From sequence record KT919973.1: DNA of 64,000 nt; one strand, 5' to 3'. The notes below the pieces were generated by a model. That model saw nothing but the letters and a program-made list of their open reading frames with translations, was not told the DNA's origin and ran no database searches. Positions 40,633-46,456 of the stretch are shown here, piece after piece. Position 1 is the first letter of the stretch. Every line of letters begins with the position of its first letter. A program made the position numbers and the translations under genes.

Positions 40633-40650
40633 ATTAAATTTTGTAAACTT

Positions 40651-40780
40651 CTTTTCTTCATTGTACATGATGTTTTTATCGTTGTAAACATCTTTTTTGA
40701 AAAACTTTTCATTCGATTTTGAATGATGTTTCGCTTTTCTTCATTGTACACGATGTTTATATCGTTGTAAACATCTTTTT
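40651..40780 (-). promoter_or_regulatory. two tandem-duplicated T4-early-like promoters
   Basis: 47-bp direct repeats (40651-97, 40734-80) each reading GTTTACA-17bp-TACAAT on minus with an internal GATGTTT/AAACATC inverted repeat. Confidence 0.8.
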
Positions 40781-41864: not shown

Positions 41865-41980
41865 TGGTAGTCGGGGCTGGATTCGAACCAGCGACCACGT
41901 GCTTAACAGGCAATTGAAGGAGTGCTGGAGCGATACTTGTCAGTATCATTCTTCGTGCTCTACCACTGAGCTACCCGACT
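41865..41980 (-). ncRNA. tRNA-Asn(GTT)-derived RNA with a 41-nt insertion in the anticodon stem
   Basis: removing AAGAATGATACTGACAAGTATCGCTCCAGCACTCCTTCAAT restores a perfect 75-nt tRNA-Asn with CCA. Confidence 0.8.
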
Positions 41981-43537: not shown

Positions 43538-43656
43538 GGGAGAGTACGGGATTTGAACCACGTGACCAAAAGATTTACCTAGTTAAGGGTTGCAGAATGA
43601 ATGCTTATCAGAATTCTTTAACATTCTTTTGCTCTACCAGACTGAGCTAACTCTCC
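43538..43656 (-). ncRNA. tRNA-like RNA C with about 50-nt anticodon-loop insertion carrying ATTCTGCAA
   Basis: GGAGAGT/ACTCTCC, GCTC-AGTCTGGTA-GAGC, AAAGA/TCTTT, TTCAAAT T loop; no standard N73-CCA. Confidence 0.7.
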
Positions 43657-43661
43657 GTTAT

Positions 43662-43764
43662 CTACTTTGTTTCGCTTGTCAGGGCGCCGAAACGCTACCT
43701 AACCAAGGATTCGAACCTTTTAACCAACACCTCGCGAAAATTATTTTTCTCGTTGGCAAAGTAG
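43662..43764 (-). ncRNA. 103-nt multi-branch RNA with a T-arm mimic
   Basis: CTACTTTG/CAAAGTAG, CCAAC/GTTGG, AAGG-TTCGAAT-CCTT, GTTTCG/CGAAAC. Confidence 0.6.
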
Positions 43765-43770
43765 TAAAAA

Positions 43771-43907
43771 CATATTGAGCAGGGTGCAGGATTCGAACCT
43801 GCGTCACGATCTTGGAAATGATATGCTAAATTGATTGCAGAATACAAACTTAACAGCTTGCGTTTATGCTACGTGTGCTAGCCACTACACCAACCCTGCT
43901 CAATATG
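43771..43907 (-). ncRNA. tRNA-like RNA B with anticodon-arm insertion carrying ATTCTGCAAT
   Basis: 15-bp extended acceptor CATATTGAGCAGGGT/ACCCTGCTCAATATG, D arm, GCAGG-TTCGAAT-CCTGC. Confidence 0.75.
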
Positions 43908-44146: not shown

Positions 44147-44293
44147 GAGAGTACATTGGTCGAGTGTAACGGAATCGAACCGTTCCCACGATCTCCCTAT
44201 GATATGCGTAAATTGGTTGCTGAATATAATCATGTCTGATTACAGTATGCTACGTGTGCTGCCACTACACCAACACTCGACCAATATACTCTC
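44147..44293 (-). ncRNA. tRNA-like RNA A (mature about 44157-44279) with insertion carrying ATTCAGCAAC
   Basis: CGAGTGT/ACACTCG-A-CCA, D arm nearly identical to RNA B, AACGG-TTCGATT-CCGTT, 21-bp precursor stem. Confidence 0.78.
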
Positions 44294-44294
44294 G

Positions 44295-44445
44295 ATATTT
44301 TAAATGTGCGCTACTTGCACGCCGACTGAGCGAATTTTAACTCAGCTAGTTTTTGATTGAGAATTCGTCCGCTAAGAGTATCCCTGCACGCCAGAACGTA
44401 TACTGGCTCCATGTATTCATTGCGGCTAACGCACATTTAAAATAT
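44295..44445 (-). ncRNA. 151-nt RNA closed by a 16-bp perfect stem
   Basis: ATATTTTAAATGTGCG/CGCACATTTAAAATAT; internal GCCAG/CTGGC and CTGAG/CTCAG hairpins. Confidence 0.65.
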
Positions 44446-44551
44446 TACTCATCTTCAGAGAAGAGGCAGAAACGATGAGTTTAGTCTGCTTAATCAATAT
44501 TGTTCATCTTCAATAAGAGGCGAGAACGATGAACTTAGCTCGCTTAATCAA
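44443..44551 (-). ncRNA. two tandem 54/55-nt H-type pseudoknot repeats (type III antitoxin-like)
   Basis: unit 1 GCGAG/CTCGC plus GTTCATC/GATGAAC; unit 2 GCAGA/TCTGC plus ACTCATC/GATGAGT; compensatory changes in both stems. Confidence 0.8.
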
Positions 44552-44559
44552 CTGTGTTA

Positions 44560-44587
44560 ATCTTAACATCATTTCAGTGTAAGTCAA
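44560..44587 (-). promoter_or_regulatory. sigma70-type promoter for the pseudoknot/tRNA-like operon
   Basis: TTGACT-16bp-TAAGAT with TGn extension and upstream A-tract. Confidence 0.75.
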
Positions 44588-44600
44588 CAACTTTTTCAAA

Positions 44601-44650
44601 TATTTCATCGAGTTGAAAGTTTGTGTTCTGTCTCTCGACTCGATGAAATA
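44601..44650 (-). ncRNA. 50-nt hairpin RNA behind its own promoter
   Basis: 13-bp stem TATTTCATCGAGT/ACTCGATGAAATA. Confidence 0.5.
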
Positions 44651-44651
44651 C

Positions 44652-44679
44652 ATTCTACATGCTTTTCAGAATAAGTCAA
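44652..44679 (-). promoter_or_regulatory. sigma70-type promoter (paralogue of 44560-44587)
   Basis: AAAAAGTTGTTGACTTA shared; TTGACT-16bp-TAGAAT. Confidence 0.75.
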
Positions 44680-44696: not shown

Positions 44697-44951
44697 TTAT
44701 ACTGAAAGAATGATACCGCTTTCTGTCTCACCTCGTTCAAGCGCAGCGTGCTTGATTTGAAGCTGAGATACAGCTTGCTGAAGCTCAGTGATAGCTTTGT
44801 CGTAAAGTTTGTTGTTCTCTTTAAGTAAAGCAATCTGATCGGTCTGCATACCGATGATATACGTCAATAATACAACGTTCTCTTCAGTAGTTAGAGTTTC
44901 GGGAGCTTCATTGTACTTCTTTAATACTGCTTCAGTAGATAAATCAGTCAT
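44697..44951 (-). CDS. coiled-coil hypothetical protein
   Basis: ATG 44951 coupled to the 57B stop. Confidence 0.75.
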   Translation of the reverse strand: MTDLSTEAVLKKYNEAPETLTTEENVVLLTYIIGMQTDQIALLKENNKLYDKAITELQQAVSQLQIKHAALERGETESGIILSV

Positions 44952-45399
44952 TACTATCAACCCAATTTAAATCAAGTGGTTCAAGATATTCATCAACAAG
45001 CCGAACTTCAGCGTTGACGGGCATAGGTGTGATCGCGTCGTCATAAGACAACGTAACGTGAGGGGTATAGTCAGGGTAGTCGTGAGTACCACCGATAGAG
45101 ATAAGATCATCGTGACGTTCTACAAGTTCTGGACATACCATCTTAGCAACAACTGCATATTTGCCGTCTTGCGTTTTCCAACAGTCGATATGTTCAACAG
45201 TAGCAACGAAAGTGGTATCGACAACAGGTACATCAATTTGCTTACGACTATAAAGCACAGTCACGTGAAATTTATCTGGTTCTAACGGATTTTTTAGACG
45301 AAGCGTTTTCTGCAATCGAACTAACTCTTGCTTACTCGCCTCGTCTAATCTGATACCAACGTAAGTTCCCTGACTTTCAAGGAACTTAGATAGTTTCAT
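44944..45399 (-). CDS. 57B: gp57B / Acb1 anti-CBASS 2H phosphoesterase
   Basis: two HxT motifs (FHVTVLYSRK, YTPHVTLSY); T4 synteny 57B-57A-1-3. Confidence 0.9.
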   Translation of the reverse strand: MKLSKFLESQGTYVGIRLDEASKQELVRLQKTLRLKNPLEPDKFHVTVLYSRKQIDVPVVDTTFVATVEHIDCWKTQDGKYAVVAKMVCPELVERHDDLISIGGTHDYPDYTPHVTLSYDDAITPMPVNAEVRLVDEYLEPLDLNWVDSND

Positions 45400-46380: not shown

Positions 46381-46402
46381 AATGCGACAAGGTGCCTATT
46401 CT

Positions 46403-46456
46403 CTAATATTACTAATACCTCTAACTTCACTAAAACTACTAATACTACTAAGATGA
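46403..46456. repeat. six tandem 9-bp units beginning CTAA
   Basis: CTAATATTA CTAATACCT CTAACTTCA CTAAAACTA CTAATACTA CTAAGATGA. Confidence 0.8.

Follow-up and report, generated by a model that had tools for sequence, protein, structure and literature searches.

What is the small RNA that opens a long run of tRNA and tRNA-like genes in a large vibriophage, and what might it do there? The question is raised by two short repeats in Vibrio phage phi-ST2 (KT919973.1), a KVP40-like member of the Straboviridae, of which we analysed a stretch of 64,000 nucleotides (nt), hereafter the window; a window position plus 62,000 gives the position in the phi-ST2 record, and the 1-kb region around the repeats is 100% identical to it. 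The repeats and all other features of their locus lie on the minus strand, with the gene 1/57A/57B block on one side and, at 36.2-43.2 kb of the window, 26-28 clustered tRNA genes on the other. A first-pass annotation read the repeats as a stand-alone tandem H-type pseudoknot RNA that resembles the antitoxins of toxin-antitoxin (TA) systems of type III, and proposed that it is an anti-defence decoy. We find that the pseudoknot is real and is new to Rfam. As for its function, we tentatively favour, with a probability of roughly 40%, a processed, trans-acting and protein-binding small RNA. The units and their promoter are laid out below, where S1 and S2 are the stems (a and b being their 5' and 3' strands) and L1 to L3 the loops.

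44560..44587, minus strand: promoter P2, of the sigma-70 type (TTGACT-16 nt-TAAGAT, TG-extended -10), which drives the pseudoknot units
44496..44551, minus strand: pseudoknot unit 1, 56 nt with tails, supported by covariance model R1
Parts of unit 1: 5' tail UUGAUUAA 44551-44544; S1a 44543-44539; L1 CUAA 44538-44535; S2a 44534-44528; L2 GUU 44527-44525; S1b 44524-44520; L3 44519-44509; S2b 44508-44502; 3' tail 44501-44496
44441..44497, minus strand: pseudoknot unit 2, 57 nt, matched by covariance model R1 at 83.6 bits
Parts of unit 2: 5' tail 44497-44490; S1a 44489-44485; L1 44484-44481; S2a 44480-44474; L2 44473-44471; S1b 44470-44466; L3 44465-44454; S2b 44453-44447; 3' tail 44446-44441

That two repeats of 54/55 nt stand close behind a strong promoter, at a distance of ~8 nt, is confirmed on the minus strand by P2 and by Tandem Repeats Finder, which reports a period of 54, 2.0 copies, 83% matches and a score of 148; a repeat search gives 76% identity between the two units over 50 nt. 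The predicted transcript start falls ~5-8 nt before the UUGAUUAA of unit 1, and the P2 hexamers are kept in 11 of the 12 aligned relatives, the exception being phage 1.081.O with a -10 element of TATCAT. Both units conform to the consensus UUGAUUAA-S1a (5)-CUAR-S2a (7)-GUU-S1b (5)-CUCUU(N2-3)UGAA-S2b (7), in which S1 and S2 are interleaved as an H-type pseudoknot; the two stems of unit 1 have energies of -4.9 and -7.7 kcal/mol. The stems that we found are identical to those first proposed: units 1 and 2 have GCGAG/CTCGC and GCAGA/TCTGC as S1, and GTTCATC/GATGAAC and ACTCATC/GATGAGT as S2, respectively. Between the two phi-ST2 copies alone, five pairs are compensated (three in S1 and two in S2) and none is broken.

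The case for the fold is carried by its relatives. We aligned the homologous region from 11 further phages (78-91% identity) with phi-ST2, and compared 18 distinct units, drawn from these 12 phages and one marine contig, with a null of 500 shuffles. Standard pairs occupy 100% of the 213 pair cells, compared with 84.8% in shuffles, and compensatory changes are present in 7 of the 12 pairs; the other five never vary. The covariation score is 0.55 as against 0.225 in shuffles, a value reached by none of the 500, and sliding the 3' partner by 1-3 columns lowers the pairing to 25-56%. S1 occurs as GCGAG/CUCGC, GCGAA/UUCGC, GCAGA/UCUGC, ACAGA/UCUGU, GCAGA/UCUGU and GCACA/UGUGC, and S2 as GUUCAUC/GAUGAAC, ACUCAUC/GAUGAGU, UCUUAUC/GAUAAGA and GAUUAUC/GAUAAUC; the G-U pair of GCAGA/UCUGU, from phage 1.081.O, is compatible with the minus strand only. 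Chance alone gives ~3-4.5% of shuffled units a 5+7 bp H-type pseudoknot, so it is covariation and not foldability that carries the argument. Nested-only folding of the units gives no excess stability (z = 0.18), a result that is expected for, and uninformative on, a pseudoknot. Finally, Rfam 15, with its ribozymes, riboswitches, small RNAs and antitoxins, yields no match over 44441-44556 at the gathering score or at E <= 10.

What does not vary may show where a partner would bind. There are 27 invariant columns, concentrated in the loops and the helix junction, and they comprise UAA of the 5' tail, CUA of L1, AUC/GAU at the inner end of S2, GUU of L2 and both UCUU and UGAA of L3. Conservation of CTAA in L1, as first described, stands for the invariant CUA but fails at the fourth position, which is R, with CUAG more frequent than CUAA. 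Similarly, the A/U-rich linker that had been called conserved is so in its UUGAUUAA part, but the 3-5 nt that follow S2b vary.

How widely is this RNA distributed? A BLAST search with a 301-nt query returns the region from 50 records, all of them Vibrio phages and all but one covering at least 98% of the query. The same 1-kb region is 88-99% identical in KVP40, nt-1, ValKK3, VH7D and ~45 further large vibriophages of the T4 type. No relative lacks the motif, its copy number is two throughout the ~50 records that cover most of the region, and the phages that carry it span at least six Vibrio host species. The description of a tandem array therefore holds for KVP40-like phages with two copies, whose distinct stems have been kept since before these phages diverged, but not for phage 1.081.O, which has a single unit with a third stem combination, nor for the marine contigs described below. 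A regular-expression search of the whole phi-ST2 genome returns the two units only, and covariance model R1 finds no further copies in the window or the marine loci.

Beyond these phages, we used strict, loop-anchored pattern scans whose matches were post-filtered for both stems. Three such scans of IMG/VR leave only KVP40 and VH7D, the remaining matches lacking the stems. Among 185,579 bacterial and archaeal species, each represented by one genome, 1 of 68 matches has the stems, and this is a phage-like marine contig; in the JGI and ENA metagenomes 2 of 37 matches pass the filter, both from the same marine lineage. The strict one-genome-per-species scan shows no copy in a chromosome of Vibrio or any other bacterium, with the qualification that TA loci vary between strains, and BLAST of 72,556 plasmids finds no copy of the motif. 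The first-pass annotation had called for a search of host genomes for a similar RNA, and within their limits these scans find none.

The three marine contigs belong to one uncultured lineage and are 93-98% identical to one another. One of them, L102 (PBMB01000011.1), is a 75-kb contig binned as a Chloroflexota metagenome-assembled genome; the other two (L147 and L150) are Tara Oceans contigs. PBMB01000011.1 is phage-like: its open reading frames (ORFs) are small and co-oriented, and apart from a NinI-like phosphatase and a DUF4942 protein their products are unknowns (PHROGs, Pfam). These contigs carry a single unit whose tail and loops are those of the vibriophages and whose stems are new and fully compensated. 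It lies just 3' of a stem-closed RNA, 9 nt 5' of a canonical tRNA-Asn and ~190 nt from the nearest promoter-like repeat. Upstream of the pseudoknot there are two to three direct copies of a ~180-nt module (L150 10500-10860 and L102 1080-1400, both minus strand), made up of a promoter-like GTTGTATTATC...TATAAT and a hairpin. One apparent protein match between the marine contig and phi-ST2 proved to be a translated RNA element and was rejected.

The neighbourhood of the vibriophage units is itself largely made of RNA genes, of which the following lie 3' of them.

44294..44446, minus strand: 'stem-A' RNA, ~150 nt, an inverted repeat with a 23-bp closing stem that begins 1 nt after unit 2 and three inner hairpins
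44147..44293, minus strand: tRNA-like gene whose acceptor stem is extended to 21 bp and which carries an inserted hairpin; inverted repeat, 95% complementary; annotated tRNA-OTHER in phi-ST2
43538-43656, 43778-43899 and 41868-41980, minus strand: further tRNA-like genes, which together with 44147-44293 have lengths of 113-147 nt

Stem-A RNA lies in the same transcription unit as the pseudoknots and has no Rfam match. Its RNAalifold consensus from 10 phages has 42 pairs, 22 of them with compensatory changes, and its invariant G-U pairs are compatible with the minus strand only; it looks like a second novel structured RNA gene. The tRNA-like gene that follows is conserved in relatives, with an inner hairpin that covaries, and 3' of it come a small ORF, the further tRNA-like genes and then the tRNA cluster. 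The gene at 43656-43538 scores 49 bits as a tRNA, with the anticodon-loop sequence AUGUU (Asn GUU) followed by a 46-nt insertion. Read by eye, the insertions of the tRNA-like genes share a motif, ATTCWGCAAYC, and a covarying hairpin, and they lie near the position of archaeal and eukaryotic tRNA introns; in KVP40 these genes are annotated as pseudo-tRNAs. No terminator-like site is predicted on the minus strand from 44550 to 42090, and ~8 kb of mostly untranslated RNA genes lie downstream of the units. Because RNA genes follow with no predicted terminator before 42.09 kb, we take the units to be the first genes of a non-coding operon.

A further tandem repeat (40641-40779; period 41, 3.4 copies, 58% matches) lies within the tRNA cluster, between tRNA-Leu and tRNA-Arg. 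Elsewhere in the genome, phi-ST2 encodes a CCA-adding enzyme, two RNA ligases, Pnkp and the 7-deazaguanine proteins QueF, FolE, QueD and QueC; these RNA-repair and 7-deazaguanine genes are found at 150184-151281, 221127-222272, 223910-224827, 249352-250359 and 238663-246345 of the phi-ST2 record. This heavy investment in the repair and modification of tRNA and other RNA may be related to the RNA operon.

Upstream of the units, the locus contains the following features.

44601..44650, minus strand: hairpin RNA just 3' of promoter P1, with a 17-19 bp stem and a 12-nt loop; inverted repeat, 89% complementary
44652..44679, minus strand: promoter P1 (TTGACT-16-TAGAAT), 10/12 consensus matches, a near-duplicate of P2 that is kept in relatives
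44697..44960, minus strand: ORF of 87 amino acids between acb1 and P1, with a sub-threshold Pfam match only
44944..45399, minus strand: acb1 (gp57B), a phosphodiesterase directed against the cyclic-oligonucleotide-based anti-phage signalling system (anti-CBASS), Pfam PF23474 Acb1, E = 8.1e-46

P1 and P2 lie in a 37-nt direct repeat that is 84% identical. The hairpin behind P1 retains its pairing in relatives through G-U changes, and its arms contain TTCATCG/CGATGAA, which is the core of pseudoknot S2; it may be a degenerate relative of the pseudoknot or a processing site. The acb1 gene is ~400 nt upstream of the units, the next gene but one, and in several records its product gp57B is labelled 'RNA ligase'. 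The statement that no toxin ORF follows the units proved correct, in that none of 10 neighbouring ORFs matches a toxin or defence family in Pfam or PADLOC. Short tandem repeats of 9, 18 and 27 nt at 46399-46451 of the window lie upstream of the gp3 region.

The fold, strand, promoter, conservation and operon context of this RNA are established, and its processing, action in trans and protein partner are what we infer. The two units would be copies of one small RNA gene, each giving ~55-60 nt that fold independently, with the 5-bp S1 stacked on the 7-bp S2 and a single-stranded 5' UUGAUUAA tail. A strong host-type promoter would drive their early transcription, and they would open a long non-coding 'stable RNA' operon that would run from the pseudoknot units through stem-A RNA and the tRNA-like genes to the tRNA cluster. 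Release from the precursor would rely on the host processing common to the neighbouring RNAs, with putative cleavage within A/U-rich spacers, at the flanking long stems and at the 5' ends of tRNAs. The freed RNA would then act in trans, presenting CUA, AUC-GUU and YUCUU..UGAA-GAU as the binding surface for one conserved partner. Most likely this partner would be a protein, for which the RNA might serve as an aptamer-like decoy or inhibitor in the way that a type III antitoxin works.

We prefer action in trans because the unit behaves as a gene, with variable copy number and with other RNA genes at its boundaries in every context, because a riboswitch platform would not fit, and because its invariant nucleotides gather in a single cluster around the helix junction. 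The nearby anti-defence gene acb1 counts for a trans-acting inhibitor, and by analogy the antitoxin-like layout may be counted for it too (PMC3401426 Table 2; PMC13682666). Within this explanation, a type III toxin or a related RNA-inhibited nuclease would be the partner in a minor share of the cases that we envisage. Invariant loops, fixed copy number, clade-wide presence and the same loops in an unrelated phage fit one conserved partner better than they fit sporadic toxins. Judged by its sequence evolution, the motif looks like a housekeeping RNA with one conserved partner and not like an arms-race decoy.

Several observations weigh against a trans-acting, protein-binding product. Our literature search returned no paper on this pseudoknot RNA. 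Since unit 2 is 1 nt from stem-A RNA and unit 1 begins almost where transcription does, the units could belong to the precursor as cis-acting segments and not be free RNAs. Their constant association with tRNA and tRNA-like genes may reflect a role in tRNA biology instead of that of a decoy. Lastly, there are no shared proteins between ~22 kb of the marine contig around the motif and the whole phi-ST2 genome, and therefore a shared phage-encoded partner is not in view.

The likeliest alternative, although we judge it rather unlikely, is a cis-acting element of the stable-RNA operon, which would work on its own transcript, for example through put-like or Nus-like antitermination, in which it would bind RNA polymerase or termination factors, or would guide processing or protect the 5' end. 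The position of the element argues for it: in 13 phages the predicted start lies 5-8 nt before the element, which is thus at the 5' end of the transcript, and those ~8 kb of mostly untranslated RNA genes come after it, the first 2.4 kb lacking a predicted terminator. Identical loops in unrelated phages would also be explained if the partner were universally conserved, for instance the transcription machinery, and tRNA and tRNA-like genes accompany the motif throughout. Even the YUCUU core of BoxA, the NusB/NusE site, lies within L3, but the full BoxA consensus GYTCTTTAANA (PMC5725501) is matched by no unit at up to one mismatch, and we rejected the BoxA reading of the units. In the marine contigs, moreover, ~190 nt separate the motif from the closest promoter-like repeat; another RNA precedes it and a tRNA follows directly. 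A simple 5' stabilizer would have no need of 27 invariant positions, and the retention of two copies with different stems suggests that it is the dosage of a product that matters.

The proposal that we inherited, a toxin-less mimic of a host TenpI/CptI-like antitoxin, is in our view quite unlikely, despite a layout that suits it well. By this account a host toxin would cut the UUGAUUAA-containing spacer, would be held inactive by the RNA, and abortive infection would fail. Two non-identical H-type repeats of 54-55 nt with single-stranded spacers reproduce the TenpI arrangement (PMC3401426 Table 2; PMC13682666). Type III loci occur in Vibrio: V. cholerae O395 and MZO-3 carry tenpIN (PMC3401426), and V. 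kanaloae has a ToxN homologue (PMC10853763). A phage precedent exists in pseudo-ToxI of phage phiTE (PMC3475682), and a strong early-type promoter, the lack of a toxin gene and the proximity of acb1 would all be in keeping with a decoy. Against this stand the scans of 185,579 species genomes, which included Vibrio hosts at one genome each, and of 72,556 plasmids, in which no similar sequence was found outside the phage-like marine contig, together with the lack of a match to any Rfam antitoxin family, a geometry unlike that of TenpI and CptI (PMC13682666) and an array that has RNA genes and not a terminator behind it. The evolutionary pattern is also at odds with it: across phages from at least six Vibrio host species the loops are invariant and the copies fixed, and the loops recur unchanged in an unrelated marine lineage, whereas type III antitoxins are diverse and toxin-specific and their loci sporadic. 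Repeat expansion in the style of phiTE appears in none of the ~50 records, and a decoy does not predict constant siting among tRNA and tRNA-like genes.

Could the units instead be small self-cleaving ribozymes, or some other processing 'punctuation' between neighbouring RNA genes? Self-cleaving ribozymes are known beside phage tRNA genes. A compact pseudoknot with many invariant unpaired nucleotides, a conserved tail before each unit and a position exactly at RNA-gene boundaries in both lineages would be consistent with such a role. Yet no ribozyme family of Rfam 15 matches, RNase P already sets the 5' end of the marine tRNA, and unit 1 stands at the very start of its transcript, where there is nothing to remove; we therefore regard self-cleavage as very unlikely.

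A tandem metabolite riboswitch, for instance one that senses a 7-deazaguanine intermediate, is scarcely more than a long shot. Several riboswitch classes are small H-type pseudoknots with invariant junction nucleotides, and tandem aptamers occur. The units also lie directly 3' of a promoter in a phage that encodes QueC, QueD, FolE and QueF. However, no Rfam riboswitch family matches, the 7-deazaguanine genes are ~130 kb away, and the layout is not that of a riboswitch, as the closing stem of another RNA begins 1 nt after unit 2 and neither an expression platform nor a regulated ORF is seen. In the marine contigs, where the tRNA starts 9 nt after S2b, no expression platform is possible because only these 9 nt separate the unit from the tRNA.

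The idea that the units are not functional RNA at all but a chance repeat, a DNA-level protein-binding repeat or a small ORF (a 47-residue ORF at 44510-44653, or KVP40.0320 on the other strand) draws on the short hypothetical ORFs annotated across the region in several records, and we can essentially dismiss it, given the compensatory changes that run through both interleaved stems and leave every pair intact, the frame-breaking 1-2-nt indels between relatives, because of which no conserved reading frame runs across the units, the ORF annotations that differ between genomes in strand and position, and the expectation that DNA-binding half-sites would be conserved and not covarying.

One further observation concerns how such RNA genes may spread. 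A ~100-nt element with a T-arm (GGTTCGAATCC) occurs at ~43665-43760 of the window and at ~9861-9959 of L150, on the minus strand in each. The phi-ST2 and marine versions are identical at 79 of 100 positions, with an identical 29-nt core, and both adjoin a tRNA-Asn gene. Among the fetched relatives it is seen in PVA8 only, although most of these loci extend just 1.5 kb past the match and may not reach it. Sequence likeness of this kind suggests an exchange of RNA-only cassettes between phage lineages. Carrying the thought further, we hold out a small chance that the pseudoknot, the T-arm element and the tRNA-Asn-type genes move together between unrelated marine phages as an RNA-only counter-defence cassette, in which the pseudoknot would inhibit an RNA-regulated host nuclease in the manner of an antitoxin, with no toxin of its own, and the tRNA-like RNAs would be decoys or spare parts. 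If true, no earlier example would be known in a T4-type phage family of a natural and widely conserved anti-defence module made of RNA.

KVP40-like phages are model broad-host-range vibriophages, and for twenty years this RNA has been either unannotated in them or mis-annotated as small ORFs. With all pairs kept, over half of them covarying and the loops invariant, it is among the best-supported new structured RNAs obtainable from sequence alone. The operon that it opens contributes a second new RNA that covaries, as well as tRNA genes that bear insertions of ~46 nt. Should the partner be a defence nuclease, antitoxin mimicry by RNA would extend from laboratory escape to a conserved natural strategy; should it be core host machinery, the RNA would represent a new tool for host take-over or for stable RNA expression. 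Either way, work on structure and expression has in the units a target that is small, well delimited and tractable.

It remains to place this RNA among known systems. The small H-type pseudoknot aptamers of the preQ1-I, SAM-II, fluoride and guanidine-III riboswitches resemble it in size, topology, invariant junction nucleotides and occasional tandem arrangement, whereas the vibriophage RNA has no Rfam match, no expression platform and no regulated coding gene. The likeness to type III antitoxins (ToxI, CptI and TenpI) stands in part, for the TenpI-like layout and the stand-alone pseudoknot RNA, but fails for the loop geometry and the organisation of the locus. The vibriophage array of about two units of ~50-57 nt falls within published ranges, which are 1.9-5.6 copies of a 31-62-nt unit for type III antitoxins overall and, for TenpI arrays, 1.9-3.0 copies with a repeat length of 39-57 nt and a mean of 50.9 (PMC3401426 Table 2). 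The enterobacterial TenpI that has been characterised combines two H-type pseudoknot repeats, not identical to each other, and their single-stranded tails in a cassette of 102 nt (PMC13682666), and the vibriophage units share this construction and also stand behind a constitutive-type promoter (PMC3401426; PMC13682666). TenpI and CptI, however, have a 1-nt L1 and a long A-rich loop that makes A-minor contacts with S1 (PMC13682666), where the vibriophage units have an L1 of 4-5 nt (4 nt in the phi-ST2 units), a 3-nt GUU junction and a pyrimidine-rich long loop. The vibriophage motif also differs from type III antitoxins in having structured RNA genes where a Rho-independent terminator and a toxin gene would follow, in being embedded in a tRNA and tRNA-like operon, in having no sequence relative in the bacterial genome and plasmid scans, and in being strongly conserved across phages when those antitoxins are very diverse in sequence. 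Like pseudo-ToxI of Pectobacterium phage phiTE, it is a phage-borne, toxin-less pseudoknot array that could neutralise an RNA-inhibited nuclease (PMC3475682); pseudo-ToxI, though, can be recognised by its sequence as similar to ToxI of the host, and its copy number varies under selection, whereas the vibriophage copies are fixed and no host counterpart was found.

With the put RNAs of HK022 and the BoxA/Nus leaders, the vibriophage RNA shares a structured, promoter-proximal position at the head of a long transcript, and in those systems the partner is universally conserved machinery, as would hold for the vibriophage RNA. The put RNAs are two stem-loops and not pseudoknots, and the marine copy of the pseudoknot, unlike these leaders, is not promoter-proximal. 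Stable RNAs C and D (species 1 and 2) are small non-tRNA RNAs of the T4 tRNA gene cluster that are processed from the tRNA operon and whose function is unknown. The viral-contig scans place the pseudoknot motif in KVP40-like phages only, which sets it apart from RNAs C and D, yet it is like them in being a small non-tRNA RNA within the tRNA operon of a T4-type phage.

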